Part shown: positions 1 to 55,275 of the stretch, one piece after another | How the letters are laid out: every line of letters starts with the position of its first letter | Position numbering within the stretch: the first letter of the stretch is position 1 | Notes under the pieces: generated by a model | What the model saw: the letters and a program-made list of their open reading frames with translations, nothing else | Told to the model about the DNA's origin: nothing | Database searches by the model: none | NCBI GenBank assembly: GCA_964019335.1 | Contig: OZ025717.1 | Location: 186,001-250,000 of the forward strand | DNA from: Diplonema japonicum | Taxonomy: Eukaryota; Protista; Euglenozoa: Diplonemea | Reading direction: 5' to 3' | DNA length: 64,000 nt | Program-made: the position numbers and the translations under genes

Positions 1-858
1 GTTAAGGGGTGACCCGTCAGCCCACTGCCAGGACGACGTGTCGAGGGGGGCCGTGCGCTTGCGAGAAGAAAAGAGCCCTGGGTAGAAAGAGAGGGTGGAA
101 CCAAAAAGCGAGACGAAGGCATCGTCCCACTTGTTGTGAACAGACATCGGGGTGTGCTTGAAGCTCAGCTCAGAAGTGCACGCGGAAGGGTTCCACGGGG
201 TCGCTGTGGGGGTCACCTCAACACAGTCACCGTCGTAAAAGGCACCCGAGACACATGGCGTGGGGCCGTAGTAAAGTGAAATTCTGCGAAAGAGGAGGTT
301 GGTCGCGGCTTGCATAGAACCTTCTTCACATCCCAGCGACAACGACTCGGGTGTCCCTGCAGCCGTTATGGGGACGGACGTCCGACCATTTACCTGTACA
401 ATAACACCGCTTAAGGACTCTTCGAACAATACAGCCACGTGTGCCCATTCCTTTAAAACGTATGTGAAGAGAATCATGGGTGTTCCCTTTGGGGTTTGCA
501 GTACGAAGTGTCCCTTGAAGACTGTTAGGGACACCGCTCCGTTCTGTGCTTTCCAGGAGACAACTGTTTGGGCAATGGAGGGGGACGATGCCACTTTAAC
601 CCATGTAGTCACTGCTGCGTCGCTGCCAGTGAGAGGCGCAAGGTTTGTAGCCTTGATGCAGCCTTCTCCAGCTCCCCACCCGGCATAAGGATCCATTACT
701 GTATCTAGTAGCCCAGTCATGTCTTTGCCTTGGCCTGTTTCATCTATTCCCCCTGGGTTTCCCCAGTACCACCTCCCTTCTAACCTTGTGGCTTCAGACG
801 ATATGGTACTGTACGTCAGTATCAACGTGAACTGCTTGACGAAGGCACATGGTGCCAT
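1..858 (-). CDS. Partial (runs off window) paralog R0 of the LamG-like + C-type-lectin-like receptor family
   Basis: Not in ORF track because no stop falls in the window. Manual translation from ATG at 858 is open to base 1: MAPCAFVKQFTLILTYSTISSEATRLEGRWYWGNPGGIDETGQG...VTTWVK...WAHVAVLF...VQVNG...SLGC...GPTPCVSGAFYDGDC...SVHNKWDD...WQWADGSPLN. The motif order matches the nine downstream paralogs. Confidence 0.88.
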   Translation of the reverse strand, partial: MAPCAFVKQFTLILTYSTISSEATRLEGRWYWGNPGGIDETGQGKDMTGLLDTVMDPYAGWGAGEGCIKATNLAPLTGSDAAVTTWVKVASSPSIAQTVVSWKAQNGAVSLTVFKGHFVLQTPKGTPMILFTYVLKEWAHVAVLFEESLSGVIVQVNGRTSVPITAAGTPESLSLGCEEGSMQAATNLLFRRISLYYGPTPCVSGAFYDGDCVEVTPTATPWNPSACTSELSFKHTPMSVHNKWDDAFVSLFGSTLSFYPGLFSSRKRTAPLDTSSWQWADGSPLN

Positions 859-2786
859 GGGGGGTTCCCCCTGAAATCAATTTTTTTTTTCGTGGCCTGT
901 GGTAAGGAGGGGTGGGGAAGGTGAGAAATATGAGAGAAATATGTGGGGTGTAGGATAACATTCTTTTTTTTGGGGGGGTATTTTTTTTTTCTCCCCCACT
1001 AGCTACGACTGCATCTATCCTGTGCAGGGGTTGCTTCAAAAAAAAAAATGATTCTTTAATGACTTATGTCCCTTTTTTGTTTCGCACGAGTAAAAAAAAT
1101 CTTTTTTTCTTTTTTTGCCTCGGCACAAGTTGCATAAGGTGGTGAAACCATTTTTTTTCAGAAGAGAAAAAAAAAAAAAACAAAAACTTTGTAGGGAAAA
1201 AAAGGGGGGGGAGGAAAGGATGAACAAAGCAACAAGACGGCTTCCTGCTAAAGTATCTCCCTTCTTTTTTTGGGGGGGTTTTTTTTCCTCTTGCAATTGA
1301 AACAAAAGGGGGGCAAGAAATCGCAGAATAAGGGGACACACGTACAATACTTACACAAACAAAAAAAAAATATAAATATATATTTCTTCACAGAAAAAAT
1401 TTAAAAAAAAAAGGAAAGAACTAGCTGTTGTTTATGTGTCATTGGGCATCAAGTACTTCCACCCAAGTCAAAAAAAAAACCTTTTTTTTTCCTCGTTTAC
1501 TCTTTTACGGTTCAATCATAACAAATCAAACTATAAAACTCAATTCTTTTTTTTTTTGAGGTATGAGCTTCCTAGGCGAGTGAACAAAACAAACGACGGT
1601 GCAAGTTTGAAAAAAAAGGGGGGGGGCTATTCACTCAAAACAGCAAAGTTACGAGTCAAAAAAAAAGAGGGGAAATATAATAATAACCATAATAATAAAG
1701 CCAACATACCGGGGACGCGCGTTATCCGGTCATCAAAAAAAAAAAGAAAAATTTAGCCCCCGATAGATGCCGCCCAACCTAGTTGGGACCGTGAGACTAT
1801 CACGCCTCGGTATTTTGGTAAAACCAAAGTTTAACAACGGATTTTTTTCTTGATTCTTCTTTTTCTTTTTGTTCTTTACCCAAAAGGTTCCTGTTCTTTT
1901 AAGAAGGATGGGAAAGAACTTGACTTGAAGGTGGTGTTATAAGGGCAGGAGCCCAGCCACCGATGGTCATAGGGGGGTAGGATAGTAGAGGGGGCACGAG
2001 TCGGTATATTTTTTTTCCTTGTGACCAAATTACTTTGAGCCCTTTTTTTTTTTGGGAGGCATGTTTCAAAGTGTCACAAAATTGCCACGTGGTATAACTA
2101 TAAAAAAAAAATTTTTTTTTCCCCTTCCCCCCTTAAAGGTTTCCAATAGGCGGAGTCTAAAGAGGTCCTTGAGGGAAAGGGGAGCGGGGGGGGTTTTACA
2201 CCTCTTTTTTTGATTGCATATTTCGCATTCTTTTTGAAAGAGACAGAGCGGCAGGGGATAACAAAGAAAAAAGGGGGAGTCACCATGTTACAAAACATTT
2301 CATAGTATTTTAAGGGAAAAAAGAAAAATGGGGCTTTGGTTGCAACACTATTTGGCATTAAGTGTGCAGCAGGGGAGGGTAAAAAAAAAAAACTTTCAAC
2401 TACCTAGTTTCTTCTTCTTTTTTTTTTTTCAATCCATAGTAGAAAGAAAGTTCACCAAGAAATGAAAATTAGAAGGAGGGGAAGAACACAACGCCACACC
2501 ACTCAAACATATTAACCTAACGCACTTCTGGTTTTTTTTTCTTTTTTTTTTTCTTGCGACTTATGTCATTGTTGCATTATACAAAAAAGAAATATAGATA
2601 AACAACGCTGAAGGGGGGGGTGTCAATAATGCACCTTTACACGACCATTCTTTGTATTTGCCCATCAAAAGATAGCTTTTCGAGAACAAGGGGAGGGAAG
2701 TACCGGTGAAAAACAAAAAATAAAAATAAAAATAAAAAAAAAATCACCTGGCGAAAAAAATAGAAACAAAAAAAAAAAAAGTTTTC

Positions 2787-5700
2787 TTAAATACTGTAGA
2801 CAACTGTAGGCCTCCTACTCCTGCGTGTTGATGAAGAATCGTTCCACTTATCCGAGTCTTCCAAGGTCGGCTTGCTTAAGAAGCTCAAGAGAGGTGTCAT
2901 GTCCACCTGGGAGGCTTCACCAAAGCTTCCAACGAAGGATTGCGGTTCCCGTGATAAGCCGGGTTCCTCATCCGTGCCCACAGAGACCACACTACTGTGG
3001 GGCTGTACCTCGTCCAATTCTATCACTCTAGGTTTTTCCTCTTCTCTTACCTCGCCAGCATTCCCTGCCCTTGCTGCCCGAACAGCATCCCAGCGCCTTC
3101 CTATCTTCACGTCAAGGCAGTACAGGATCAGGTCGTACACTCCTTTGAATATCATCAACAGTGCTGTCAAGAACAGTAGGTACGCCGCCCACTTCATCAT
3201 CACCTCATTCCCACCCACCCCAATCGCTATCGCCATCAGCAGGACAGCCACGAACATCAGCCCGCTCATAGCTGTCCCCGTCACCATGTCAAGTGTCGAG
3301 TTGTAAGGGCGGAGGGTCACAATCGCCAGGAAGTAGAAGAAGAGGACAATCGTGATCGAAGCGTTCCTGAACATGCAGGTGTCGTGGTTATGAGGCTTCC
3401 AGACAGAGGTCAAGGCCAAGGCCAGAATCTGGGTCATCTCCACAAGAGAGAACCAGTGGTAGTTGTATCTGTACTGCTCGAAGAAGAGCCCGTACTGCTC
3501 CACAAAGTAGTCGGGTGCCCCGTCCTTCCGAACCCATACTTCTGATCCGAAGACAATAATGTAAGCAGTGCGCTTCCACCCAGTGTACACTGTCGACATT
3601 GCAATATCTGCTAGGAGTGCCGCGTCACTGTCACTGTTGTATGCCTTCACCATCGCAGCTGCGTCCCAATTGATCTTCGGGTCGAGAACAGTTGTTGCCT
3701 GGAACTTACTTTTTCGCAGAAGTAGGAACCACATCGCAACAGGGAGAGACACACAAAGAGCGAGTGCCAGAACTCCGATGATTGCGACCCAGGCGGGTGC
3801 CCGAGAGGGGAAGAAGGCAAGGTTCGAGGCCGCAATACTGGTCCCCATCAGCAGCCAAATCATTGGGATGTAGACCAGACCAGGTGCCCTGACGTAGAAG
3901 ATTGCCGTTTCCCAAGGTACACTCAGCCATGCCACCTGCACCCATGCTATCACGTAGTTTAGAATCAAGAAGACCACCACAATCCCAAGGTTGGAGACAA
4001 CAGCCCCCAAGAAGTACTTCTGTTTGTGGTCCCCGATCCCGAAGCCAAGGGGGTGGAACTCCCAATCCAGAGGCTCCCCACCCCCAAGGTCGATGTCCTC
4101 AACCTCGCAGTCCATCCCAATCACAGCAGCAAGCTTCGCACCACTAGGGTTTACTGCTGTGGCACCAGAAGTGACGCCTTTCGCTGCATTCTTCTCAGCT
4201 TCAGGGATCACCTGCCCAGGGACTGGTGTCAGCGGGGGGGGAGTCACCATCTCTTTTGGTGGTGCGTTGGGCGAGGAAGTTCCGGCTGCAACCGGTTGTG
4301 ACGTCACGGGGACTGGTGGTGCGCCTGTGGGCGGGGCGATGGGCGTGGATGTGGGCACTGCTGTCATCGGTTGTGACGTCAACGGGGAGCCGGTCAGCGG
4401 GGAACTGGTGGCCGGAATAACTGTCGGTGGTGAACCTGTGGGCGGGGCGGTGGGCGCTGATGTAGGCACAGCTGTCATAGGTTGCGATGTCGGCGAGCTG
4501 GTTGCTGGAGCAGACGATGGCACCACTGTGGGCCCACCTGTGGCAGGGTGCGATGTCGGCGGCACAATTGTATCAGGGAAGGCCGTCGCGGGGGCTGCCG
4601 TGAGCGGTGCAACCGTTCTGGGAATAGGTGTAGCAGGGGGATTCGTAGCAGGGGGATTAGTAGCAGGCGCAGCAGTGTCAGGGAAGGGTGTCGCAGGGGG
4701 ATTAGTAGAAGGGGGCAGGGTAGAGGGTGCATTTGTGTCGGGAAACGGAGTCCACGGGGCCCTGGTGTCCGGGAATGGCGTTGACGGCGCATCAGTGTCA
4801 GGGGGCAACGTGGCAGGCACCTTAGTAGGAGGTGCAGACGTGCTAGGGGACCTTGTTGCGGGTGCACTGGTATCTGGAAGAGGAGTAGGTGGCGCTTGTG
4901 TGACAGGAACAGGTGTTGAGGGTGGTTTCGTGTCAGGGAAGGGTGTGGAAGGAGCAGTGGTGTCTGGCGCCTCGGTAATCATCTGCCACTCATAACACAG
5001 ATGTTTGAAACTATTGGTACAGGCAAGGTCCGCCAGCCCAGGCCCCAGTGTGGGACTGTACCTTGCGCAGGTCGTGCTGACTTCGTTTGGCTGCACATGT
5101 GCTTCGCAACCGTCTTTGCTGTTGTACCAGTCGGCCTGCCGATGCTTCGCGTCACCGCACCACAACAGCTTCAGGTCCATCGGGGTCCCGTCCTCCCAAA
5201 ACCAGTTGGAAGAAGAGGGTTGAGTGTTCGGTCTTGGCCCTGGTGCAGAGATCCCCACCCAACAGTCGGCATTGGGCGACGACCGGCTGTACAGGAGATC
5301 GTCCCAATACGTGTGGATGCTGACAAGCTTCCCGTCAGGACTGCACGCCCCCTTGTCGAAGGCGGACTCGGGTGTGAACCAATGGCATTTACCGTTGTAA
5401 TAAAAATTACCCTGTCCGGAGCAAGGGTAGGCTCCCACATGGAAGGTTGATTTATAGATGAAAGATCCTGGTTGCATTGGAAAATCGATGTTGCGGCCGT
5501 CCTGCTTAGCACACCCGAGGCTGAACACGGTCGGGACGAAGCTCACCGCGAAAGGTATGTTCTTCCCCACACGGTACCCGTTCTGCCAAATATTAACTGC
5601 TGCAGAGGGGGTGAACACGAAGTTGAGATGGTTCCACTGGTCCCCCACATCGGGGAAGGTTTTCTTTAGGTCACCTGCACCGGAAGCACCGTACGTGTAA

Positions 5701-6098
5701 AGAGCTAAATCTGTCTTCCCTGTGGCGTCTCTCTTTTGGATATACAACACAATGGACGCTGCTCCTGAGGACCATGAGAACACAGCTTGTTGCTTTGTGG
5801 CCGAGCTCTTGGCGCGGACCCATATCCCCAGGGTGGTCGTCTGGGCCATTTGAAAGCCTGTGTTCCCGGCGTTGATGGGTAGGTACGAACAGGCCTGTGT
5901 GCTCCCGTCGTGGGTAGCCACATCTGTTCCCGTCCAGGGGTCCTTCACGAACTTCACCCCCCCCATTACCATCATTGCATTCCCCTTACCGCTTATGTCG
6001 TTGCCCGAACCATCCGTGTACCACTCTCCTATTTTTTCCATTGCGAGCGTTGTTTTCAACATGATGCAGGTTGCTAGATAAAGTATCCGCAACCTCAT
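2787..6098 (-). CDS. R1: signal peptide + LamG/ConA-like + C-type-lectin-like + Pro/Thr stalk + 7-TM receptor-like protein
   Basis: 1103-aa ORF with a hydrophobic N-terminus. W..DG..D.SG.GN / WVR / W.H / NG pattern of LamG-like jelly rolls; WVGI, WFWEDG, QPN and D..C......C of C-type lectins; seven hydrophobic segments with YGLFFEQYR..WF and RPY motifs. Confidence 0.9.
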   Translation of the reverse strand: MRLRILYLATCIMLKTTLAMEKIGEWYTDGSGNDISGKGNAMMVMGGVKFVKDPWTGTDVATHDGSTQACSYLPINAGNTGFQMAQTTTLGIWVRAKSSATKQQAVFSWSSGAASIVLYIQKRDATGKTDLALYTYGASGAGDLKKTFPDVGDQWNHLNFVFTPSAAVNIWQNGYRVGKNIPFAVSFVPTVFSLGCAKQDGRNIDFPMQPGSFIYKSTFHVGAYPCSGQGNFYYNGKCHWFTPESAFDKGACSPDGKLVSIHTYWDDLLYSRSSPNADCWVGISAPGPRPNTQPSSSNWFWEDGTPMDLKLLWCGDAKHRQADWYNSKDGCEAHVQPNEVSTTCARYSPTLGPGLADLACTNSFKHLCYEWQMITEAPDTTAPSTPFPDTKPPSTPVPVTQAPPTPLPDTSAPATRSPSTSAPPTKVPATLPPDTDAPSTPFPDTRAPWTPFPDTNAPSTLPPSTNPPATPFPDTAAPATNPPATNPPATPIPRTVAPLTAAPATAFPDTIVPPTSHPATGGPTVVPSSAPATSSPTSQPMTAVPTSAPTAPPTGSPPTVIPATSSPLTGSPLTSQPMTAVPTSTPIAPPTGAPPVPVTSQPVAAGTSSPNAPPKEMVTPPPLTPVPGQVIPEAEKNAAKGVTSGATAVNPSGAKLAAVIGMDCEVEDIDLGGGEPLDWEFHPLGFGIGDHKQKYFLGAVVSNLGIVVVFLILNYVIAWVQVAWLSVPWETAIFYVRAPGLVYIPMIWLLMGTSIAASNLAFFPSRAPAWVAIIGVLALALCVSLPVAMWFLLLRKSKFQATTVLDPKINWDAAAMVKAYNSDSDAALLADIAMSTVYTGWKRTAYIIVFGSEVWVRKDGAPDYFVEQYGLFFEQYRYNYHWFSLVEMTQILALALTSVWKPHNHDTCMFRNASITIVLFFYFLAIVTLRPYNSTLDMVTGTAMSGLMFVAVLLMAIAIGVGGNEVMMKWAAYLLFLTALLMIFKGVYDLILYCLDVKIGRRWDAVRAARAGNAGEVREEEKPRVIELDEVQPHSSVVSVGTDEEPGLSREPQSFVGSFGEASQVDMTPLLSFLSKPTLEDSDKWNDSSSTRRSRRPTVVYSI

Positions 6099-6167
6099 GT
6101 TGGGGGGAAGGGGGGGGGGGAACCTTTTTTTTTTCTTTTTTTTTCTAGAACTGCAAGGAAATAAAAT

Positions 6168-8732: not shown

Positions 8733-11700
8733 TCACATCGAAATAAGTGTCGCATACTTCCTTCCTTGCCTGGTTGTCACAGGGGACGTCAGGCTTCGCT
8801 TTAGATTCCTGAACTTGTTTTCCGTTGCCACTGGCTGTTCTACATCCATACACGGCCTTCCCAGAAGGCTCAGTAAGGGCTGCATATCCATACGACTCAT
8901 GTCTTCTCCAGTGGTGGTGTTCTTCAGCTCCCTTGACGACAGTACCACAGTGCTGGCGTGCACGTCCATGTCAGGCGTGCCCCCTCTCTCTCCAGGAGTC
9001 TGGTCGCCGTCTACGCTCCAAGAAGCTTTGCTCAACTCACACAGTTCAGTTATAGTAGGCTGCTGTGCTTTCCACTTCTCCACATTCCCTGCCCTCGCTG
9101 CCCGAACAGCATCCCAGCGCCTTCCTATCTTCACGTCAAGGCAGTACAGGATCAGGTCGTACGCTCCTTTGAACATCATCACCAGTGCCGTGAAGAAGAG
9201 CAGGTGCGCCGCCCACTTCATCATCACTGCACTCCCACCCACCCCGATCGCTATCGCCATCAGCAGGACAGCCACGAACATCAGCCCGCTCAGTATCGTC
9301 CCCGTCACCATGTCAAGTGTCGAGTTGTAAGGGCGGAGGGTCACAATCGCCAGGAAGTAGAAGAAGAGGACAATCGTGATCGAAACGTTCCTGAACATGC
9401 ACATCCCATGGGTCCGAGGCTTCCAAGCAGAGGACAGGGACAGAGCGAGGATCTGCACCATCTCCACAAGGGAGAACCAGTGGAAGTTGTGCCTGTACTG
9501 CTCGAAGAAGAGCCCGTACCGCTCCACAAAGTACTCAGAGGCCCCGTCCTTCCGAACCCACACCTCTGACCCGAAGACGAGGATGTAGGCGGTGCGCTTC
9601 CACCCAGTGTACACGGTCCCCGCTTCCATCTTCCCCGTCTCATCAGCCCCGTCAGCAGTCCCGAATCCCTTCACAACCTCTGCTGCATCCTCGTTGATCT
9701 TCGGGTCGGGAACAGTTGTTGCCTGAAACTTCCCCCTCCTCAAAAGGGAGAACCACATCACGATGGGGAAGGCCACACAGAGGGCGAGGACAGCAGCCCC
9801 GATGGTCGACACCCAAGCGGGTGCCCGAGAGGGGAAGAAGGTGAGGTTCGAGGCCGCCATGCTGGTCCCTGTGAGAAGCCACATCATCGGGATGTAGCCC
9901 AGACCAGGTGCCCTGACGTAGAAGATTGCCGTTGACAGAGGAACCTGCAAGAACGCCACCTGCACCCATGCTATCGCATAGTTCAGAATCAAGAAGACCA
10001 CCACAATCCCGAGGTTGGAGACAACAGCCCCCAAGAAGTACTTCTGCGCGTGGTCCCCGATCCCAATCCCAAGGGGGTGGAACTCCCAATCCAGAGGCTC
10101 CCCACCCCCAAGGTCGATGTCCTCAACCTCGCAGTTCATCCCGCTCACGATGGCAAGCTTCCCACCGCCAGTACCCGCAGCAACAGCGGCCCCCGTCGCA
10201 CCACCCGCTACCAAACTCTTCTCAGATGCAGGAATCACCTTCCCAGGGGAAGGTGTTGGAGGGGTGAGAACAGCTTCCTCCTTCGGTGCCTGTGTCGGAG
10301 GAGAGGTGACCGGTACCGTTGTGGGGACAGCCGTCACAGGCTGTTGTGTCAGTGGTGAGAAGGTCCCTGGTACTGCTGTCGAAGGGGCTTGTGTTGGTGG
10401 TGTTGTGGTAGGTGCCTGGGTGTCAGGAAAGGGTGTTGCAGGGGCAGAGGTGACAGGTGGGAAGGTGGCCGGCACTGCCGTCTTCGGAAAAGGAGTTGCA
10501 GGAGCTGAGGTGTCAGGTACCTTCGTATCGGGTGTCGCTGTGTCGGGGAAGGGTGTTGGAGGTGCCACAGTAAGCGGTACCACTGTGTCGGGAAAAGGTG
10601 TTGTTGGTGCTGTTGTTGCAGGAGAACTCGTATCAGGGAAGGGGGTGAGAGGTGCCGTGGTTGGAGGTGAATTGGTGTCAGGGAAGGGTGTTGCAGGGGC
10701 TACTGTTGCTGGTGCCGCAGTAAAAGGTGCATTGGTGTCTGGGAAGGGTGTTGCCGGAGCATCTGTTGGGATGGCGGTGTCAGGGAAGGGTGTTGGGGGT
10801 GCAGCAGTGGTCCCAGGTACAAGTGTTGCAGGTGACAATGTGTCGGGAGCTGGTGTGGGAGGTGATACTGTTCCAGGAAATGGGGTTGCTGGAGCATCAG
10901 TATCAGGGAAGGGTGTTGCAGGGGCTGTGGTTGCCGGGGAAGGGGTCTGAGGTGCTGCCGTGTCAGGGAAGGGAGTTGCTGGTGCCGCAGTAAGAGGTGC
11001 ATTGGTGTCGGGGAAAGGAGTTGCTGGAGCATTTGTTGGGATGGCGGTGTCAGGGAAGGGTGTTGGGGGTGCAGCAGTGGTCCCAGGTACAAGTGTTGAG
11101 GGTGGCAATGTGTCGGGAGCTGGTGTGGGAGGTGATACTGTTCCAGGAAATGGGGTTGCCGGAGCATCAGTATTGGGGAAGGGTGTTGCAGGGGCTGCTG
11201 TTGGTGGAGCATCGGTATCGGGGAAGGGAGTCTGTGGTGCTACTGTATCAGGGAAGGGTGTTGCAGGAGCTGTGGTTGCTGGGAAGGGAGTCAGCGGTGC
11301 TGATGTGTCAGGAAAGGGTGTTGCAGGCGAACTCGTATCGGGTGCATTGGTGTCTGGAAAAGGTGTTGGAGGAGCAAGAGTGTCAGGGAAGGGTGTTGCT
11401 GGAGCATCAGTATTGGGTGCATTAGTGGGTGGAACACTTGTTGCTGGTGACGCTGTGTCAGGGAATGGAGTAACTGGAGCGGTTGTGTCAGGTGCATTAG
11501 TATCAGGAAATGGTGTCGCGGGGGCACCTGTATCAGGAGCGAGGGTCGGAGGTGCGTCAGTGTCTGGGAATGGCGTAGCCGGAGCAGTGGTATTGGGTGC
11601 ATCAGTGTCAGGGAATGGTGTAGATGGAACAAGAGTATCAGGGAAGGGGGTCGACGGAGCCGCAGTTTCAATAGGGTCATAAGTGCACAGGTGAACATGA

Positions 11701-45217: not shown

Positions 45218-48200
45218 TTAAATGGCTACAATCTTCGCAAGGTTTTTTCGGCTTGACGGGGGGGTGGTGGTCGAACGTAAACTAGACTTTTTTGAACCTG
45301 TCAGCAACAGGGGATCTGCTTTCTTGTACACTGGCCTCGATATAAGGGTTTGCAAAGCTGAGAAATCAAGGTCCGATCCTACTCTTCTCATTTTCCCGCT
45401 GTTGTTCCAGTCCTTTGAATAGATCGAGTTGTGCGTTGCAGCCCGTGGTCCCGTCATGGCACGGAGTGACGCCTCCTCGTCCACACTCCAAGATGCCTCG
45501 CTTGCCACCAGTGACATCTCTAACACCCTTTCGTTTCCTTCCATCCTCCCTTTCCACTTCTCCACATTCCCCGCCCTCGCTGCCCGAACAGCATCCCAGC
45601 GCCTTCCTATCTTCACGTCAAGGCAGTACAGGATCAGGTCGTATACTCCTTTGAACATCATCAACAGTGCCGTGAAGAACAGTAGGTACGCCGCCCACTT
45701 CATCATCATCGCATTCCCACCCACCCCAATTGCTATCGCCATCAGCAGGACAGCCACGAACATCAGCCCGCTCATCACAGTCGCTGTTATCATGTCAAGT
45801 GTCGAGTTGTAAGGGCGGAGGGTCACAATCGCCAGGAAGAAGAAGAACAGCAATATTGTAATCAAAATGTTCCTGAACATGCACATCCCATGGTTGTGAG
45901 GCTTCCAAGCAGAGGACAAGGCCAAGGCCAGCATCTGCACCATCTCCACAATGGAGAACCAGTGGAAGTGGTGCCTGTACTGCTCGAAGAAGAGCCCGTA
46001 CTGCTCCACAAAGTAGTCGGGTGCCCCGTCCTTCCGAACCCACACCTCTGACCCATAGACAAGGATGTAAGCAGTGCGCTTCCACCCAGTGTACACTGTC
46101 GCTACTTCTGCCTTCCCTGTCTCAATCCCGTCGCCCTCTTTAGTCCCGAACCCCTTCACGATCTCTGCCGCCTCCTTATTGATCTTCGGGTCGGGAACAG
46201 TTGTTGCCTTGAACTTGCCCCTCCGCAGCAACGTCATCCACATGACGACAGGGAGGGACAAGCAGAGGGTGAGAAAGACAACCCCAACAACAGCAACCCA
46301 GGCGGGTGCCCGAGAGGGGAAGAAGGTGAGGTTCGAGGCCGCAATGCTGGTCCCCATCAGCAGCCAAATCATTGGGATGTAGCCCAGACCAGGTGCCCTG
46401 ACGTAGAAGATTGCCGTTGACAGAGGAACCTGCAAGAACGCCACCTGCACCCATGCTATCGCATAGTTCACTGCAAAGAAGACCACCACAATCCCGAGGT
46501 TGGAGACAACAGCCCCCAAGAAGTACTTCTGCGCGTGGTCCCCGATCCCAATCCCAAGGGGGTGGAACTCCCAATCCAGAGGCTCCCCACCCCCAAGGTC
46601 GATGTCCTCAACCTCGCAGTTCATTCCAATCACAGCAGCAAGTTTCGCACCACCAGGGTTCACTGCCGCAGCTGCTGAAGTTGCACTTTCCGTCGCCTTC
46701 TTCTCAGATGCAGGAATCACCTTCCCAGGGGTAGGTGTCGGAGGGGTGAGAACAGCTTCCTCCTTCGGTGCTTGTGTCGGAGGAGAGGTGACCGGTACCG
46801 TTGTGGGGACAGCCGTCACTGGCTGCTGTGTCAGTGGTGAGAAGGTCCCTGGTACTGCTGTCGAAGGGGCCAGTGTTGATGGCGCTGACGTTGTTGGGGC
46901 AGAGGTGGGAACTGCCGTCGGTGGGAAGGTGTCAGGGGCCGCTGTTGGGAGGGAGGTGGGTGTCGTTGTGGGAACTGCTGTGCTTGGGGAGAAGGTGGAT
47001 GGAACAGAAGTAGGCGTGAGTGTTGTTGGGGGTGTTGTGTCTGGGGCGGATGTTGGTGAAGCTGTGGGAGTGGCAGTGGGTGCCACTGTGTCAGGAAAGG
47101 GTGTGGAAGGAGCGCTTGTGTCGGGGAACGGAGTTGGCGGGGAAGATGTTGTGGGGGCAGAGGTATCGGGGGCATCAGTGGGAACAGCTGTCGGGACAGC
47201 AGTGCTGGGAGGCAGTGTGGGAGCTGCTGTCGGTGCCAGTGTGTCGGGGGCAGGTGATGGAAGTGCCGTAGGTGTCAGGGTGTCAGGGGAGGGTGTGGAG
47301 GGTGAAACGGTGTCGGGGAACGGGGTGGGCGGCGAAGGTGTGGCAGGTGCAGGGGTATCAGGTGCATTCGTGTCAGGGAATGGGGTGGGTGGAGCACGAG
47401 AGATCGGTGCAGGAGTGTCAGGTGCAAGAGTATCGGGAAAGGGTGTAGCGGGGGCCGGGGTGCTGGGGGCAGGTGTGGTGGGAGCTGAAGTGTCAGGAGC
47501 TGAGGTGTCAGGGGCAGGAGTAACAGGAGCTGACGTATCCGGGGCGGGAGTAGCAGGTGCTGAAGTGTCAGGGGCAGGGGTGGTAGGGGCTGAAGTGTCA
47601 GGGGCAGGTGTAGCAGGGGCTGAGGTGTCAGGGGCTGGAGTGGCAGGTGCTGAGGTATCAGGGGCAGGGGTGGTAGGGGCTGAGGTGTCAGGGGCAGGGG
47701 TAGCAGGAGCTGAAGTGTCAGGGGCAGGGGTGGTAGGGGCTGAGGTGTCAGGGGCAGGTGTAGCAGGTGCTGAGGTGTTAGGAGCAGGTGTACTTGGTGC
47801 TGATGTATCTGGCGCGATAGTGGGAGGAGCCAATGTGTCAGGTGCAACTGTTTGGGGGAGCACCCAGGTGTAACAGAGATGCCGTCTTGACTCACTGCAG
47901 TTTTTGTCCAGCAAACCTGGCCCTTTGCTGTAATCGTACCTGGAGCAAAGGTCATGAAGGGAGTCCGGCTGCTCGTTCGAGTCGCAGGTAGTTTTACCAT
48001 CCTCCCAATCGGTCGATTGGTGGTTCACGTCACCGCACCAGACAAGAGGGTAGTCCATGGTTGTCCCATCGGCCCATTCCCAATTGTAGTGTGACTTATT
48101 GTGACGAATGCTCGGGGAGGAAAGGCCGATCCAGTAGTGGGCATCAACGCGGCACCTGCTGTAGATGAGGTCGTCCCAGATGGAGTGGACGCTGACAAGG

Positions 48201-48976
48201 TTGCCCTTGGGGGAGCAGATGTTGGAGTCGAAGGGGCCAGCGGTCTCAAACCAGTGGCACTTCCCATCATAAAAAAAGTCTTTCTGCCCTGTGCAGGGGT
48301 AGGCCCCCTCGTAGTAGGCGACATCGTAAAAGTAAGACCCGGCGCTCATATGGTTGGTGTCAACTGTGTCGGCAACGTAGTCGTATGCACACCCTACGCT
48401 GAACCCTCTGGGCGTGAAGCTGGTTACGGCAATGTCGTCCTTTTTCATATCACCGTTGAACCATATTGTCATTTCGTTCACTTCGAGGCGAAGGGTGTAG
48501 TGGTTCCACTGCGTGGACCCAACGTCGTTTAACACATAGCTGTTCTGGTTCACGTTGCCACCTATGGTCTGCTGGAATACGGCCACGTTTGTGTTTCCAC
48601 TTGCACCCATGAAGAAGGCCAGTCCAAGACGTTTGCCACCGGTTCCTGACCAGGCCAGTATAGTTTGAGGGGTTATTGTTGCTTGGGCTCGAAGCCATAT
48701 GCTGATGACCGTAACTGCAGTAAATGAAAATGAGCCCCCTGTGCTTCTAACATAAGAGCACGACTGGGGTGACCCGTCATATGCACTTGCAGTCTCACCT
48801 GTCCAAGGGTCAGTGGCGGTGCCGTGACCTGACATGACAGTCATGTCATTGCCATTGCCACTGATGTCGCTGCCTGTTCCGTCCGCAAACCACTCCCCTT
48901 TGAGGCTAATCCCTACTGCCGCTGCAATGATACAATGCAATACACAGAGGACCCCTCCTCCATGGGAGTGTATCAT
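45218..48976 (-). CDS. R8: lectin-mucin-7TM receptor-like paralog (R1-type head, QPD lectin motif)
   Basis: The ORF extends to ATG 49081, but ATG 48976 (MIHSHGGGVLCVLHCIIAAAVG) places the signal peptide at the N-terminus. WIGL, WEWADG and QPD lectin motifs are present. Confidence 0.88.
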   Translation of the reverse strand: MIHSHGGGVLCVLHCIIAAAVGISLKGEWFADGTGSDISGNGNDMTVMSGHGTATDPWTGETASAYDGSPQSCSYVRSTGGSFSFTAVTVISIWLRAQATITPQTILAWSGTGGKRLGLAFFMGASGNTNVAVFQQTIGGNVNQNSYVLNDVGSTQWNHYTLRLEVNEMTIWFNGDMKKDDIAVTSFTPRGFSVGCAYDYVADTVDTNHMSAGSYFYDVAYYEGAYPCTGQKDFFYDGKCHWFETAGPFDSNICSPKGNLVSVHSIWDDLIYSRCRVDAHYWIGLSSPSIRHNKSHYNWEWADGTTMDYPLVWCGDVNHQSTDWEDGKTTCDSNEQPDSLHDLCSRYDYSKGPGLLDKNCSESRRHLCYTWVLPQTVAPDTLAPPTIAPDTSAPSTPAPNTSAPATPAPDTSAPTTPAPDTSAPATPAPDTSAPTTPAPDTSAPATPAPDTSAPATPAPDTSAPTTPAPDTSAPATPAPDTSAPVTPAPDTSAPDTSAPTTPAPSTPAPATPFPDTLAPDTPAPISRAPPTPFPDTNAPDTPAPATPSPPTPFPDTVSPSTPSPDTLTPTALPSPAPDTLAPTAAPTLPPSTAVPTAVPTDAPDTSAPTTSSPPTPFPDTSAPSTPFPDTVAPTATPTASPTSAPDTTPPTTLTPTSVPSTFSPSTAVPTTTPTSLPTAAPDTFPPTAVPTSAPTTSAPSTLAPSTAVPGTFSPLTQQPVTAVPTTVPVTSPPTQAPKEEAVLTPPTPTPGKVIPASEKKATESATSAAAAVNPGGAKLAAVIGMNCEVEDIDLGGGEPLDWEFHPLGIGIGDHAQKYFLGAVVSNLGIVVVFFAVNYAIAWVQVAFLQVPLSTAIFYVRAPGLGYIPMIWLLMGTSIAASNLTFFPSRAPAWVAVVGVVFLTLCLSLPVVMWMTLLRRGKFKATTVPDPKINKEAAEIVKGFGTKEGDGIETGKAEVATVYTGWKRTAYILVYGSEVWVRKDGAPDYFVEQYGLFFEQYRHHFHWFSIVEMVQMLALALSSAWKPHNHGMCMFRNILITILLFFFFLAIVTLRPYNSTLDMITATVMSGLMFVAVLLMAIAIGVGGNAMMMKWAAYLLFFTALLMMFKGVYDLILYCLDVKIGRRWDAVRAARAGNVEKWKGRMEGNERVLEMSLVASEASWSVDEEASLRAMTGPRAATHNSIYSKDWNNSGKMRRVGSDLDFSALQTLISRPVYKKADPLLLTGSKKSSLRSTTTPPSSRKNLAKIVAI

Positions 48977-49440: not shown

Positions 49441-49484
<44 letters not shown>

Positions 49485-49522
49485 ACAGCACACACACGTA
49501 ATGAAAAAAAAAAAAAAAAAAA

Positions 49523-49849: not shown

Positions 49850-51354
49850 AAAAAAAGATATATCTGGTAAAACCAACTCATCTGTCTAAAGAACTGGTGT
49901 TCTTTATTCAGACAAGTTGGGACTAGGTGCGCTAGCCTTTAATTGTGCAGAGTTTTCGCCATTTGTTAGGTACAAAAAAATCTTTTTTGAATTATTGAAG
50001 TCCCCTCTGCAATTTTCCGGCTTCGTATGAGAACGAGAAGAAAAAAAAAGGGGGGGGGGAACTGGTTTACAGAGCCCCTCCTCTGGTAGCTGCTGTGCAA
50101 TATATGGGTCTAGGATACCATTGTGTGCCACCGCCCCGTAACCGCTGCCTTGATGGCACTCGGGAAATGGTGCGGGGACGTCCAGTATGCGCCATGCTAC
50201 AATGGTAGGGTTTGCTGGAGAAATCGACATTAAATAAAAAGATGAAAAGCACTGAAATGCCGCGCAGCTACACTAGCACTCCGAAGTTTCCTTCAGGATA
50301 GCTGGAACCAACAAAGGAGTTACGCCAGGTAATAATAATGATTGGAGGCATTGAGATATCGCTACCTGTTTCAAACTTTAAAGGGCGCACACACGGGGCA
50401 TATCGATTGTACCCTGGACCGCTCCTGGTAAAGAGAAAAAGCTGAGGTTCACCTGAGTGCGTGACCTTTTTGTTTTTTTTTTGAGTCGTTTTGAAAAGAC
50501 ACCCACACAAAAAATATTTCACTACTTTACTCGGAATTTTTTTTTTTTTTTGGAACAAGGAAAAAGGATTATAAAAAAAGAACACGCAAAGAAATTTGGG
50601 GGCGGGGGTGGGGGGGTCATATTAACTTTAAAAACGTCGATAAGTCACTTTTTTTCCAGTTTTGCCATGTATTTTTACTACCCAGAATCCCGTTTTTCAC
50701 CTTTTATAGGCTGTTCGACACATTTTTTAGCAAAAAAACTGAAAAAAAGGTGACTTTATCGACCACATGACTCCCCTAGGATCATGTTGGTAAGGAAACG
50801 CGTTTCCAAGCTTTTTTTTTTTGAAAATAAGGAAACGGAAACGGATACGAAAGATTTTCCCGTTTCTTGCCAACATAGCCTTTGGGGGGGGGGGGGGGGG
50901 GGGGGGGCAACGATGACTTGTTTAAATGCGTTATTGTCGAAAAGCACAGTGTATAAAAGCTTTGTATAAAAAGACAGTTAAAGTCTGTGCAATCAAAACA
51001 AAAATTCGCTTCAAGCCTTTAGTAAGGATTAAAAGAACAAAGCCTTTTTTTTATGAAGGAAATAGTTGTCTTCCATAATAAGGATAAGAAAAAGAGGAAA
51101 AGGAAAGAAGTAGGTGAGGCGATAAGGAGGTCCTCCCCCGTCTCGCCCTGACCACATTGAAAAAGAACGAGGGGGGGGGGGGGGGGGGGGAGAGAATATG
51201 GTTCGGAAAGGGAATAAGGAAAGCGTGGCAGTAAAGTTGTTCGTAAACTTTTTTTTACCTGCTTATGTTGCTACCGAGAGCCAAGTCTTCGGCGGCTTCC
51301 CCGGGATGCAAGAACGGAAAAAACGCAAACCTGAGATGATAGGAAAAAAAAAAG

Positions 51355-51397
51355 GGGAGGGAGGGAGGGAGGGAGGGAGGGAGGGAGGGAGGGAGGG
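51355..51397. repeat. (GGGA)n microsatellite immediately 3' of the R9 stop
   Basis: About ten GGGA units are visible. Confidence 0.9.
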
Positions 51398-51411
51398 GAT
51401 GAAAAATTGTC

Positions 51412-54400
51412 TTAAATCGACACAAATCTGCTGCCGATCGACGTTGTAGAGTTAACAGTGGCAGAATTTCTTGCAGCCCATTTCTGTGGGGAGTTGCTTC
51501 TTGTCCTTCGCACTGGGGGTCTGAAGGACGAGGTGCTCTGATCCAACCCGTCCTTTTCCACCTTTTCATACACAGGTCTGTCGATTAAAGTTTTCAGTGC
51601 TGAAAGATTAAGGTCAGAATCGTGCATCTTGCCGATCGGCTTGGTTTGTCTCTGGCTGCTTGAGAACACAGAATGGTAAGTTGCTGCCCTAGGTACTCGT
51701 ACTCTACTAGGAGCACTTGGTACTATCGGTACTGCTGTTCCTAAGACAGGTACAAGGCCCTCATCCATGCTCCAAGATGCCTCGCTTGACGCTAGTAACG
51801 ACATTTCCAGCGCGCTTTCATCGAAGTCCAGCTTCTTCCCTTTCCACTTCTCCACATTCCCCGCCCTCGCTGCCCGAACAGCATCCCAGCGCCTTCCTAT
51901 CTTCACGTCAAGGGCGTACAGGATCAGGTCGTATACTCCTTTGAACATCATCAACAGTGCCGTGAAGAACAGTAGGTACGCCGCCCACTTCATCATCATC
52001 GCATTCCCACCCACCCCAATTGCTATCGCCATCAGCAGGACAGCCACGAACATCAGCCCGCTCATCACAGTCGCTGTTATCATGTCAAGTGTCGAGTTGT
52101 AAGGGCGGAGGGTCACAATCGCCAGGAAGAAGAAGAACAGAACAAGGGTGATCAAGACGTTCCTGAACATGCACATCCCATGGTTGTGAGGCTTCCAAGC
52201 AGAGGACAAGGCCAAGGTCAGCATCTGCACCATCTCCACAATGGAGAACCAGTGGAAGCTGTGCTTGTACTGCTCGAAGAAGAGCCCGTACTGCTCCACA
52301 AAGTAGTCGGGTGCCCCGTCCTTCCGAACCCACACTTCTGACCCATAGACAAGGATGTAAGCAGTGCGCTTCCACCCAGTGTACACTGTCGCTACTTCTG
52401 CCTTCCCTGTCTCAATCCTGTCACCCTCTAATGCCCCGAACCCCTTCACGATCTCTGCTGCATCCTCATTGATCTTCGGGTCGGGAACAGTTGTTGCCTT
52501 GAACTTGCCCCTCCGCAGCAACGTCATCCACATGACGACAGGGAGGGACAAGCAGAGGGTGAGAAAGACAACCCCAACAACAGCAACCCAGGCGGGTGCC
52601 CGAGAGGGGAAGAAGGTGAGGTTCGAGGCCGCCATGCTCGTCCCTGTGAGAAGCCAAATCATTGGGATGTAGACCAGACCAGGTGCCCTGACGTAGAAGA
52701 TTGCCGTTGACAGAGGAACTTTGAAGTACGCCACCTGCACCCATGCTATCGCATAGTTCACTGCAAAGAAGACCACCACAATCCCGAGGTTGGAGACAAC
52801 AGCCCCCAAGAAGTACTTCTGCGCGTGGTCCCCGATCCCAATCCCAAGGGGGTGGAACTCCCAATCCAGAGGCTCCCCACCCCCAAGGTCGATGTCCTCA
52901 ACCTCGCAGTTCATTCCAATCACAGCAGCAAGTTTCGCACCACCAGGGTTCACTGCCGCAGCTGCTGAAGTTGCACTTTCCGTCGCCTTCTTCTCAGATG
53001 CAGGAATCACCTTCCCAGGGGTAGGTGTCGGAGGGGTGAGAACAGCTTCCTCCTTCGGTGCTTGTGTCGGAGGAGAGGTGACCGGTACCGTTGTGGGGAC
53101 AGCCGTCACTGGCTGCTGTGTCAGTGGTGAGAAGGTCCCTGGTACTGCTGTCGAAGGGGCCAGTGTTGATGGCGCTGACGTTGTTGGGGCAGAGGTGGGA
53201 ACTGCCGTCGGTGGGAAGGTGTCAGGGGCCGCTGTTGGGAGGGAGGTGGGTGTCGTTGTGGGAACTGCTGTGCTTGGGGAGAAGGTGGATGGAACAGAAG
53301 TAGGCGTGAGTGTTGTTGGGGGTGTTGTGTCTGGGGCGGATGTTGGTGAAGCTGTGGGAGTGGCAGTGGGTGCCACTGTGTCAGGAAAGGGTGTGGAAGG
53401 AGCGCTTGTGTCGGGGAACGGAGTTGGCGGGGAAGATGTTGTGGGGGCAGAGGTATCGGGGGCATCAGTGGGAACAGCTGTCGGGACAGCAGTGCTGGGA
53501 GGCAGTGTGGGAGCTGCTGTCGGTGCCAGTGTGTCGGGGGCAGGTGATGGAAGTGCCGTAGGTGTCAGGGTGTCAGGGGAGGGTGTGGAGGGTGAAACGG
53601 TGTCGGGGAACGGGGTGGGCGGCGAAGGTGTGGCAGGTGCAGGGGTATCAGGTGCATTCGTGTCAGGGAATGGGGTGGGTGGAGCACGAGAGATCGGTGC
53701 AGGAGTGTCAGGTGCAAGAGTATCGGGAAAGGGTGTAGCGGGGGCCGGGGTGCTGGGGGCAGGTGTGGTGGGAGCTGAAGTGTCAGGAGCTGAGGTGTCA
53801 GGGGCAGGAGTAACAGGAGCTGACGTATCCGGGGCGGGAGTAGCAGGTGCTGAAGTGTCAGGGGCAGGGGTGGTAGGGGCTGAAGTGTCAGGGGCAGGTG
53901 TAGCAGGGGCTGAGGTGTCAGGGGCTGGAGTGGCAGGTGCTGAGGTATCAGGGGCAGGGGTAGCAGGAGCTGAGGTGTCAGGGGCAGGTGTAATTGGTGC
54001 TGATGTATCTGGCGCGATAGTGGGAGGAGCACCCGTCTCAGGAAGAGGAGTAAAAGGTGCCACAGTATCCGGGAACGGCGTAGCTGGCGCTGCCGTATCT
54101 GGAAAAGGTGTCGCTGGAGCACCTGTATCAGGAAAGGGCGTAGGAGGCGCCGCTGTGTCCGGAAAAGGTGTATCAGGGGCCAAGGTAGTCAAAGGGTTGA
54201 ATGCGCACATGTGGCTGTATAGCTCACTGCAGTCAACATCGATGAGGCCAGGGCCCAGGGAGCGGTCGAGTACTGTGCACATGGTAGAGGAGTTCCCCGG
54301 CATGGGATTGGTTTCGCAAGCACTGCCAGAAGTGCTCCAGTATGCAGTTCGGTGCTGCGCATCGCCGCACCACACTGTAGTATAGTCCAGCGGCGTAGCG

Positions 54401-55275
54401 TCCTCCCACGTGTAGTTCAGAGAGAACGCCGCAGAGACAAGTCCAGACCAAGTGGGCTGGGCAGGACTGAAACCGTTAACGAAAAGATCGTCCCAAGGGG
54501 AGTGGATGGAGACAACCATCGCGAAAGGCTCCACAGAAGCACAAGCCGACACATCGTACACCGCAGCAGCGGGAGAAACAAAATAACACAGATTGTTGTA
54601 AAGAGACCCCGTGGAGCAAGGGTAGGGACCAGTCCGCAGGGCCATGCCGTACAGGTACGTCGTGGTGGCGATCGGCTTGTCCACTATCAAACCATTGTAG
54701 TGGCAACCGATATTGAAAAAACGGGGTTGAAAGCTGTCGTAGTTGTAGCTGCCCAGCCGTACTCCGTTAACTTCAAGTAGAAGTGTTGTGGTGGAAGGGA
54801 CGACGTGCAGTACGATATACGACCAGTGATGCTCTGTTATGTCGAAGGTCTTTTTTACTTGCTTCACACCGAAGACGTTGATGTACGCAAGCGCAGCACT
54901 GGCGCCCTGTAGCTCAACACGCAAACGCTTGTAAGTCGCAGACTCTTGCCATGAAAACAGCGTTTGGGTTGCCCATTGGTAGTCTGGTTTCACCCAAAAC
55001 GAAAGTGTTGTTTCAGTCCTCATCATCAGTTCGTCGGCGTTGCTATTCACAAGCGTGCCACACCCTGCAAAGCCTGTACGGGTGAACGTCTGTTCACCTG
55101 CCCACGCATCGGGTTTGAAACCGACATTGTAAGGGTTCAGAGCGTGCCCGTTGCCTGTCCTGTCCTGCCAATCGCCTTCAAACAGCCATTCTGCTTCGAT
55201 ACCCCCTTTTGTGGGCGAACACCAAGATAAAAGTAAAATGATGATGATGATGGGTTGTGTTGTCCCTGATGCCAT
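51412..55275 (-). CDS. R9: lectin-mucin-7TM receptor-like paralog
   Basis: The ORF track starts at TTG 55314. The first ATG (MASGTTQPIIIIILLLSWC) is at 55275. The stalk is near-identical to R8. Confidence 0.9.
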   Translation of the reverse strand: MASGTTQPIIIIILLLSWCSPTKGGIEAEWLFEGDWQDRTGNGHALNPYNVGFKPDAWAGEQTFTRTGFAGCGTLVNSNADELMMRTETTLSFWVKPDYQWATQTLFSWQESATYKRLRVELQGASAALAYINVFGVKQVKKTFDITEHHWSYIVLHVVPSTTTLLLEVNGVRLGSYNYDSFQPRFFNIGCHYNGLIVDKPIATTTYLYGMALRTGPYPCSTGSLYNNLCYFVSPAAAVYDVSACASVEPFAMVVSIHSPWDDLFVNGFSPAQPTWSGLVSAAFSLNYTWEDATPLDYTTVWCGDAQHRTAYWSTSGSACETNPMPGNSSTMCTVLDRSLGPGLIDVDCSELYSHMCAFNPLTTLAPDTPFPDTAAPPTPFPDTGAPATPFPDTAAPATPFPDTVAPFTPLPETGAPPTIAPDTSAPITPAPDTSAPATPAPDTSAPATPAPDTSAPATPAPDTSAPTTPAPDTSAPATPAPDTSAPVTPAPDTSAPDTSAPTTPAPSTPAPATPFPDTLAPDTPAPISRAPPTPFPDTNAPDTPAPATPSPPTPFPDTVSPSTPSPDTLTPTALPSPAPDTLAPTAAPTLPPSTAVPTAVPTDAPDTSAPTTSSPPTPFPDTSAPSTPFPDTVAPTATPTASPTSAPDTTPPTTLTPTSVPSTFSPSTAVPTTTPTSLPTAAPDTFPPTAVPTSAPTTSAPSTLAPSTAVPGTFSPLTQQPVTAVPTTVPVTSPPTQAPKEEAVLTPPTPTPGKVIPASEKKATESATSAAAAVNPGGAKLAAVIGMNCEVEDIDLGGGEPLDWEFHPLGIGIGDHAQKYFLGAVVSNLGIVVVFFAVNYAIAWVQVAYFKVPLSTAIFYVRAPGLVYIPMIWLLTGTSMAASNLTFFPSRAPAWVAVVGVVFLTLCLSLPVVMWMTLLRRGKFKATTVPDPKINEDAAEIVKGFGALEGDRIETGKAEVATVYTGWKRTAYILVYGSEVWVRKDGAPDYFVEQYGLFFEQYKHSFHWFSIVEMVQMLTLALSSAWKPHNHGMCMFRNVLITLVLFFFFLAIVTLRPYNSTLDMITATVMSGLMFVAVLLMAIAIGVGGNAMMMKWAAYLLFFTALLMMFKGVYDLILYALDVKIGRRWDAVRAARAGNVEKWKGKKLDFDESALEMSLLASSEASWSMDEGLVPVLGTAVPIVPSAPSRVRVPRAATYHSVFSSSQRQTKPIGKMHDSDLNLSALKTLIDRPVYEKVEKDGLDQSTSSFRPPVRRTRSNSPQKWAARNSATVNSTTSIGSRFVSI

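Follow-up and report, generated by a model that had tools for sequence, protein, structure and literature searches.

The window analysed here, a 64,000-nucleotide stretch of the Diplonema japonicum genome (positions 186001-250000 of contig OZ025717.1, hereafter C70, noted G000:C70:186001-250000, in an assembly of 62.5 Mb and 132 contigs), probably carries a tandem array of intact paralogous genes for multi-pass cell-surface proteins, in which diverse heads are set on a common body maintained by gene conversion. From the N- to the C-terminus, the proteins consist of a head with two lectin-like folds, a Pro/Thr-rich stalk, a module of seven transmembrane (TM) helices and a cytoplasmic tail. The best reading of their divergence is that the proximal stalk and the TM module are homogenised by segmental gene conversion or unequal exchange, which stops where homology fails.

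Six-frame translation of the window gave nine complete intronless open reading frames (ORFs) of 1103 to 1353 codons without internal stops (G1 to G9, Table 1), whose starts were placed at the first ATG ahead of a hydrophobic signal-like segment. They are the nine ORFs of at least 1100 amino acids (aa) in the window, every one on the minus strand. A tenth head (G0) lies at the very beginning of the window, where it is matched in tblastn by the heads of G3 (792-1) and G1 (828-1). Its full ORF (L021:164-3877, minus strand, 1238 aa) has a head that fits the head profile with an E-value of 4.7e-54 and a TM module (C70:183631-184755) 70% identical to that of G3. The start-to-start distance between the genes is 5.3-7.7 kb, in agreement with the ten or more co-oriented paralogues at intervals of roughly 5-7.5 kb reported in the initial annotation, and the spacers between them (1.5-3.7 kb) have a GC content of 35-41% vs 57-60% in the genes. 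The array extends past these ten units: 13 genes with this type of head are located on C70 between 183.6 and 283.7 kb, and one additional copy on each of contigs C109 and C44 brings the genome-wide number to 15.

Divergence is not uniform along these genes. The proteins were cut at the last Cys of the head, 20 residues before an invariant CEVEDIDL motif and after RRWDAVRAARAGN. The pairwise amino-acid identity of the heads ranges from 27 to 56% (mean 40), whereas that of the TM modules (366-371 aa) ranges from 79 to 100% (mean 85). The cytoplasmic tails, with identities of 21-70% (mean 35), are as variable as the heads, and the constant part of the body begins in the proximal stalk and finishes with the last helix. 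At the DNA level, G2 is 99.7% identical to G3 and G4 over 1333 bp (positions 9068-10400 in G2), G3 and G4 are 99.5% identical over 2605 bp, from about 10 nt past the stop codon to the stalk/head junction, and G8 and G9 are 96.2% identical over 2302 bp. The block shared by G2, G3 and G4, whose TM modules were seen to be near-identical from the outset, is thus 99.5-99.7% identical. These near-identical blocks are sharp-ended and take in the repeat stalk, which is unconstrained, and the intergenic DNA is not alignable between units. Across the nine copies, the last 300 nt of the TM module are 91-100% identical.

Synonymous divergence (dS) and its ratio to nonsynonymous divergence (dN/dS) were computed by domain on codon alignments with the Nei-Gojobori method (NG86). 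Heads and tails have a saturated dS (>1.2 or not computable), against values of 0.00 to 0.41 in the TM module, with 0-0.004 among G2, G3 and G4, 0.05 between G8 and G9 and 0.19-0.41 in the other pairs. The two domains are alike in dN/dS, at about 0.3 (0.27-0.52 for the TM module, and 0.16-0.36 for those heads in which it is computable). Selection alone would leave synonymous sites saturated. The common ancestor of the TM segments is thus much younger than that of the heads they are joined to, and their low dS at a similar dN/dS points to the constant body as a product of segmental gene conversion and not only of stronger constraint. The relationships among copies agree with this conclusion. 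The similarity of the TM modules is greatest between physically adjacent genes, and G8, sister to the C44 copy in the head tree (SH-aLRT, the approximate likelihood-ratio test support, of 100), groups with its neighbour G9 in the TM tree. The head alignment rejects the grouping of G8 with G9 (log-likelihood difference 71, p-value of the approximately unbiased test, p-AU, 1e-4) and the TM alignment disfavours that of G8 with the C44 copy (log-likelihood difference 22, p-AU 0.051), both groups having been named after the trees had been seen. The initial annotation described variable heads on constant bodies: the contrast in identity is real, but the tails vary as much as the heads, and the dS values show that the contrast is a difference in age and not demonstrated diversifying selection on the heads.

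Two other explanations of this pattern were weighed. In the first, the body would be constant through much stronger purifying selection alone, all domains being equally old and free of conversion. The end of similarity at one codon (after RAARAGN) in most pairs and the 45-57% conservation of the module across diplonemids speak in its favour, but it is improbable considering that synonymous sites differ 5- to more than 100-fold between domains of like dN/dS, that the blocks of 1.3-2.6 kb at 99.5-99.7% identity span the unconstrained repeat stalk, and that TM similarity follows adjacency while the head and TM trees conflict. In the second, the near-identical blocks or some of the copies would result from mis-assembly of repeats, since the repeat-rich stalks are hard to assemble and no read or contig spanned a whole gene. 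This we consider hardly credible: every copy has its own unique head, tail and intergenic DNA, and the blocks are not exact copies, as they carry a few substitutions and an 8-bp indel. Moreover, the head DNA of G6 is present in 10 public runs from 3 studies, and pieces of the G4 and G6 heads are found unchanged in public runs from three studies.

The architecture of the conserved module was examined on an AlphaFold model of the G3 copy computed from 17 paralogues (predicted local distance difference test, pLDDT, 78.7; predicted template-modelling score, pTM, 0.76). Seven helices are predicted, at module residues 51-82, 97-119, 126-151, 240-256, 262-286, 292-317 and 322-356, in line with the seven TM helices counted in the initial annotation. 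A conserved and ordered segment of about 85 residues, modelled as two short strands and three helices, separates TM3 from TM4. The basic residues after TM3 (RRGK) and TM7 (KIGRR...RAAR), together with the signal-peptide-like N-terminus and the large ectodomain, indicate an N-terminus outside and a TM3-TM4 loop and a tail inside. Only about 45 residues, with low pLDDT, connect the stalk to TM1. Just outside TM1 lies an acidic juxtamembrane motif of about 25 residues, C-x-V-E-D-[IV]-D-L...L-D-W-E-F-H-P (16050-16110 in G3), modelled with a pLDDT below 50, which is the most conserved extracellular element, even among paralogues of 31-35% identity. It may be a Ca2+ site, a cleavage site or a point of contact with the helices.

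The head, mucin-like stalk and seven-helix body had suggested the layout of adhesion G-protein-coupled receptors (GPCRs), and a receptor of this kind would couple its body to heterotrimeric G proteins. The number of helices and their orientation fit this proposal, and GPCRs occupy the top, non-significant rows of the Foldseek search of the TM model against the Protein Data Bank (PDB). The likeness does not extend beyond this overall logic. That search returned no meaningful fold match (best E 0.48, TM-score at most 0.21), VIA-align against 48,161 chains matched two-helix hairpins only (Z at most 8.6), and the TM profile had no match among PDB sequences. Neither GPS nor GAIN domains were hit by Pfam in the window copies at E<=0.1, no 7tm Pfam family was matched among 17 members, and the space between stalk and TM1 is reduced to the 45 residues mentioned above. 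As homology points elsewhere, to DGF-1_C and PF06011, GPCR-like signalling is a very improbable function for these proteins.

The relatives of the module were identified through divergent paralogues in the same genome. One of them (L006) matches the G3 module in blastp with an E-value of 1e-79 and 40% identity (39% in alignment A3), and also matches the Pfam family DGF-1_C (PF11040) with 35.8 bits for a cut-off of 27.3, over profile positions 2-255 of 259. Another (L007), 32-33% identical to the G3 module, reaches 31.5 bits for a cut-off of 28.5 over helices 4-7 with PF06011, the fungal "TRP" or Pkd2/Flc family of which we take Pkd2 to be the prototype, and a third (L004) weakly matches both families. 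Genome-wide, DGF-1_C is detected at 6 loci, four of them above cut-off, and PF06011 at 9 loci, six of them above cut-off and all over profile positions ~272-415, corresponding to TM4-TM7. As a lead only, the module also neighbours clusters carrying PF06011 and PF11040 in the protein Atlas. Because paralogues of 33-40% identity pass the thresholds of DGF-1_C and PF06011, the likeness to the Bodo saltans bodonins and Trypanosoma cruzi DGF-1, put forward in the initial annotation as a comparison of layouts, can be read as homology and not analogy. On these profile matches, the seven-helix module probably belongs to a superfamily that includes the C-terminal domain of bodonin and DGF-1 as well as fungal PF06011, and is not a GPCR.

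Bodonin was described as a multi-copy family in which a variable ectodomain is combined with about seven TM helices and an intracellular domain; its TM domain is related to that of DGF-1, and it was proposed as an adhesin for prey or substrate (Jackson et al. 2016, PMC4728078). The D. japonicum proteins likewise form a large multi-copy family of predicted surface proteins with these three parts; more than 100 genes of the genome carry the module on many heads, with the link to DGF-1_C made through paralogues. They differ from bodonin by their lineage, diplonemid and not kinetoplastid, and by an ectodomain made of LamG and C-type lectin-like domains on a Pro/Thr stalk vs the Ser/Thr/Asn-rich beta-helix or autotransporter-like ectodomains of bodonin, a distinction drawn from published descriptions. 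T. cruzi DGF-1 is also a multigene family with a large ectodomain followed by a C-terminal multi-helix membrane region, recently described as seven beta-helix ribs, an Ig-like hat and 7-9 helices (preprint 10.64898/2026.07.27.741050). Unlike DGF-1, the array proteins have no beta-helix ribs (no PbH1 or pectin-lyase hits) and no evident Ig-like hat in the ~45 residues between stalk and TM1. The hidden Markov models (HMMs) of the ribs and of the hat-TM region built in that preprint had no match in D. papillatum (10.64898/2026.07.27.741050), whereas the TM module is here found to be abundant in diplonemids. PF06011 members such as Pkd2 and yeast Flc have the same general plan as the array proteins, in which a signal peptide and an N-terminal domain, extracellular or luminal, are followed by a multi-pass region and a cytosolic tail, but their head domains differ, and the alignment is restricted to TM4-TM7 and the preceding loop.

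This relationship raises the possibility that the module is a Ca2+-permeable, tension- or ligand-gated channel like Pkd2, opened when a bound particle pulls on the stiff glycosylated stalk. Reconstituted Schizosaccharomyces pombe Pkd2 passes Ca2+ on membrane stretch, with its ectodomain outside and its tail inside (PMC9727806), i.e. the layout predicted here. In addition to the paralogues that pass PF06011 and to the weak matches of the window copies over TM4-TM7, two elements invariant across the superfamily, the predicted cytoplasmic loop between TM3 and TM4 and the acidic motif next to the membrane, would be compatible with such a function. On the other hand, the PF06011 match spans four helices only and is below threshold in the window copies, and there is no solved structure or pore motif to compare it with. 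The Foldseek and VIA-align matches of the TM model include no TRP or PKD structure, and the six-TM fold of TRP and polycystin channels proper, with its voltage-sensor-like and pore parts, is not recovered. A channel is accordingly an unlikely candidate.

The heads, of about 340 aa, are predicted to join a ConA/LamG-type jelly roll and a C-type lectin-like domain (CTLD). An AlphaFold2 model of the G6 head, computed from 18 homologues, has a pLDDT of 89.4 and a pTM of 0.87, and matches ConA-like domains in Foldseek (E 7.8e-8). In VIA-align, residues 18-230 superimpose on domain 4 of AbnA, which binds arabinan (Z 17.2, root-mean-square deviation, rmsd, 3.1 over 187 aa). Further matches, owed to the shared fold only, are to sialidase lectin domains, CBM40 and the lectin-like HCN domain of clostridial neurotoxins. 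Residues 217-359 superimpose on the carbohydrate-recognition domain (CRD) of langerin (Z 16.2, rmsd 2.3 over 119 aa) and on the galactose-specific lectin 1jzn (Z 16.1, rmsd 1.9 over 122 aa), and the order of their secondary structures (beta1-alpha1-alpha2-beta2, long loop region, beta3-5) fits a CTLD. The lectin folds expected from the letters of the sequence are thus recovered in the model. Pfam supports the jelly roll only marginally, as Laminin_G_3 (PF13385) is above its cut-off of 27.6 bits in G1 (29.0 bits) and reaches 18-25 bits in the other copies. Pfam Lectin_C likewise remains sub-threshold in the window copies (19.9 vs 22.6 bits; best E 0.0013, in G8). The CTLD sequence signature (a WIGL-like motif, WxWxDG and a conserved Cys framework) is nevertheless present in the heads, and a profile of the nine CTLD halves retrieves DEC-205 (E 2.5e-30) and single CRDs such as those of snaclecs, DC-SIGN, CD23 and NKG2D (1e-9 to 1e-8). 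These matches are confined to profile positions ~4-90, i.e. the first two thirds of the domain, the long-loop region being not alignable to known CRDs.

This region departs from canonical CTLDs by an extra Cys pair (WCGD...C) and by the absence, in most copies, of the canonical EPN and WND residues, whose placement was inferred from position relative to the Cys framework. At the position of the EPN tripeptide, G1 has QPN and G8 QPD, and the other seven copies have KPS, KPS, RPS, KPD, RPD, RPV and MPG. The WND position reads GL[FILA]D, with N in G6, and is altered in all nine copies. A canonical Ca2+/sugar triad is therefore plausible in two of the nine heads only, G1 and G8, and most heads resemble non-canonical CTLDs, which could bind proteins or other surfaces. 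The glycan-recognition repertoire proposed in the initial annotation is consequently unproven. The G3 head presents a further particularity at 17700-17712, where it alone is without the otherwise invariant first Cys of the CTLD (PYPS vs PYPCS), so that one disulphide of the long-form CTLD hairpin should be missing.

The stalk (274-496 aa) contains 27-29% Pro, 19-24% Thr and 14-18% Ala, no Cys and up to 26 PFPxT repeats. This composition is mucin- or extensin-like, as was first noted, and suggests that the stalk may be O-glycosylated. On the plus strand, all the stalks contain ORFs of 311-531 aa with a high content of Gly, Val, Ala and Ser (Table 1); they are the antisense of the Pro/Thr repeats and not genes.

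The cytoplasmic tails (80-166 aa) are variable overall, with conserved islands: VEKWKG, an acidic Ser-rich segment (SEASWSMDEE), a basic stretch and a hydrophobic C-terminus. Six of the nine tails also contain [IV]DM[KQT]PLLxxLxRP, which fits the [DE]xxxL[LI] sorting pattern. The proteins might thus be endocytic cargo receptors, in which the heads would capture particles, glycosylated or not, this acidic di-leucine-like motif would drive clathrin/adaptor-protein (AP) uptake, as in CTLD proteins of the mannose-receptor type, and the seven-helix module would only serve as an anchor. The conservation of D-M-x-P-L-L and of the hydrophobic C-terminus in otherwise divergent tails is consistent with this role, as is the sequence of the CTLD, which comes closest to those of DEC-205, the mannose receptor and PLA2R, endocytic animal receptors that share its fold. 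These animal receptors are however single-pass while the array proteins are multi-pass, and seven helices with a conserved cytoplasmic loop exceed the needs of an anchor. Short linear motifs also arise by chance, and the tails of G8 and G9 do not carry the motif. Uptake of cargo therefore has a real, although minor, share of the probability. The G4 tail differs by an 8-bp deletion relative to G3 (21405-21420), which puts the last ~45 codons out of frame and abolishes IDMKPLLSLL..RP. The 8 bp are present in contigs of runs X1 and X2 and absent from those of X5 and X9. A contig retains a single variant, which makes the existence of both forms probable, and the run contigs do not show which gene carries which form.

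The TM module is much more widespread in the genome than the LamG-CTLD head. At least 116 matches were found, many of them in other tandem arrays (on C18, C7, C103, C37, C69, C66 and C49). The heads of the sampled members of the superfamily are diverse, including the two lectin-like domains in reverse order (CTLD then LamG), LamG alone, LVIVD repeats and Cys-rich modules. Members located on other contigs (L001, L002, L003, L006 and L008-L011) have as ectodomains a bona fide Lectin_C (E 9e-14) with LamG behind it, LamG alone, LVIVD repeats, or Cys-rich modules without Pfam match. Further along C70 (262.8-267.3 kb; L019:2808-7256, minus strand), an ORF of 1483 codons, counted among the 15 genes with the array head, has the same LamG+CTLD head (E 6e-95) and a much more divergent TM module (E 1e-26), and shows that heads are combined with different bodies. 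It has a beta-rich, non-mucin segment ahead of TM1, which might correspond to the hat of DGF-1.

Beyond this genome, an exhaustive profile search retrieved 1397 cluster representatives at E<=1e-3, of which 140 at E<=1e-30. The named representatives that were looked up all belong to diplonemids (Diplonema japonicum, D. papillatum, Sulcionema, Namystynia, Hemistasia and Artemidia) or to the prokinetoplastid Apiculatamorpha; Rhynchopus is also among the family-bearing diplonemids. Heads similar to those of the array were found by scanning 158 retrieved proteins with the head HMM, a word-based search with the head having found none. Among these proteins, the combination of head, stalk and body is limited to DIPPA_33099 of D. 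papillatum, a transcript of Rhynchopus humris whose stalk is Cys-rich and not mucin-like, and one protein of a European Nucleotide Archive (ENA) assembly. As judged from these hits, the LamG-CTLD-stalk-7-TM combination is not unique to this genome. One D. papillatum protein of 5026 aa annotated as "Neurogenic locus Notch protein" (P0064, KAJ9472212.1) carries the TM module in its middle, at residues 1601-1928, so the family is hidden under the names of ectodomain repeats in published diplonemid annotation. The D. japonicum transcripts that were retrieved belong to another subfamily, at L008, and one of them shares its N-terminus exactly with a member of this locus. The HSP90 of this genome is 98% identical to that of D. 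japonicum and 72-74% identical to those of trypanosomatids, which together with this transcript points to D. japonicum or a very near relative as the organism. Our literature search found no paper describing a LamG-CTLD 7-TM family in diplonemids; a preprint on free-living kinetoplastid genomes contains nothing on the family, and lectins, mucins, DGF and bodonin all go unmentioned in the paper on the D. papillatum genome.

Several observations weigh against a gene-converted array of expressed surface proteins related to DGF-1. The order of the array and the near-identical blocks rest on one assembly, since the short contigs of the public runs bridged no repeat, and the sharp 3' limit common to the blocks, at the end of the TM module, may partly reflect constraint and not the ends of conversion tracts. 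Selection on the heads is not measurable because their dS is saturated. The window TM modules themselves have no DGF-1_C hit (E<=1) and reach only 14.3-16.4 bits with PF06011, below threshold, so their membership of the superfamily would be transitive, through the paralogues. The TM model was built on 17 sequences of one genome and has no solved structure for comparison. Finally, the G6 head was found in no run on record as RNA, and the exact window proteins are absent from a collection of 15 billion proteins.

Beyond the anatomy, folds, homology, conversion and family size described above, we infer a surface location and a role for these proteins. They would be plasma-membrane proteins holding diverse binding heads away from the membrane on long glycosylated stalks. 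The heads could recognise prey, particles, substrate or other cells, or adhere to them, as proposed for bodonin, and the seven-helix module may be a shared anchoring, sorting/trafficking or transducing unit. Old and deeply diverged heads would sit on an interchangeable common body, kept near-uniform in its proximal stalk and TM module by gene conversion or unequal exchange between neighbours; conversion of the body would leave different heads on a common body and give rise to mosaics such as G8. Regarding the function of the whole protein, we would rank an anchor or adhesin first, an endocytic cargo receptor second and a stretch- or ligand-gated channel third. A broader and more speculative extension of the last proposal, which we regard as doubtful, is a hitherto unrecognised class of contact receptors in which the pull induced by a ligand through the lectin-fold head and a rigid stalk would gate a Ca2+-permeable module of Pkd2/DGF-1_C type, dozens of diplonemid head types (LamG-CTLD, LVIVD propeller, Cys-rich, EGF-like) sharing one gene-converted transducer. 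If this were true, the membrane domain of trypanosomatid DGF-1 and bodonin would also be a channel.

Whatever their precise function, these genes suggest that diplonemids carry a large modular surface repertoire, with many ectodomain types on one common seven-helix body. The homology would place the origin of the DGF-1/bodonin module at least at the common ancestor of diplonemids and kinetoplastids, and the family described here is new by its lineage, different from that of bodonin and DGF-1, and by its undescribed combination of head domains. The link to the fungal Pkd2/Flc family provides a testable functional hypothesis for DGF-1, one of the T. cruzi gene families about which least is understood. 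The locus also represents a clean natural example of segmental concerted evolution, with a homogenised mid-gene region between heads and tails that diverge.

Table 1. Positions in the window of the array genes, of their domains and of the ORFs antisense to the stalks
Feature	Positions	Strand	Length	Head	Stalk	TM module	Tail	Remarks
G0	1-850	-						N-terminal ~280 codons (head) of a tenth paralogue, running off the window start; end approximate (~850); located by tblastn with heads
G1	2787-6098	-	1103 aa	4992-6098	4170-4991	3060-4169	2790-3059	
G2	8733-12794	-	1353 aa	11682-12794	10194-11681	9084-10193	8736-9083	Length from first ATG
G3	14679-18383	-	1234 aa	17295-18383	16170-17294	15060-16169	14682-15059	
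G4	21286-25056	-	1256 aa	23971-25056	22735-23970	21625-22734	21289-21624	Tail frameshifted, 8-bp deletion near 21412
G5	26550-30401	-	1283 aa	29325-30401	27891-29324	26793-27890	26553-26792	
G6	32206-36051	-	1281 aa	34975-36051	33814-34974	32707-33813	32209-32706	
G7	39725-43708	-	1327 aa	42617-43708	41204-42616	40094-41203	39728-40093	
G8	45218-48976	-	1252 aa	47870-48976	46679-47869	45566-46678	45221-45565	Mosaic: G1/C44-type head on G9-type stalk and TM module
G9	51412-55275	-	1287 aa	54202-55275	52969-54201	51856-52968	51415-51855	
Antisense stalk ORFs	3991-4995, 10015-10950, 15991-17295, 22556-23971, 28333-29325, 33635-34915, 41595-42680, 46500-47873, 52790-54385	+						

An Rfam scan of the window returned no matches. 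Two other genes were noted in the remainder of the window, on the same strand as the array. The first, annotated just downstream of it (57057-58643, minus strand), encodes a 528-aa ankyrin-repeat protein with numerous near-identical 33-aa repeats (Ank_2 E 1e-64). The second (61397-62824, minus strand) encodes a 475-aa protein with a signal-like N-terminus and no Pfam or PDB sequence match. Its GVDVDYEE motif recalls the catalytic sites of GH18, and the assignment to a GH18-like enzyme was rejected as it has no Pfam or PDB support. A paralogue of this 475-aa protein with an identical N-terminal sequence is present about 6 kb past the window end (L017:4776-6242, minus strand). Slightly further, at 258.7-260.0 kb of C70 (L017:8742-9998, minus strand), a reverse-transcriptase-like ORF fragment attributable to a retroelement lies between two parts of the array.

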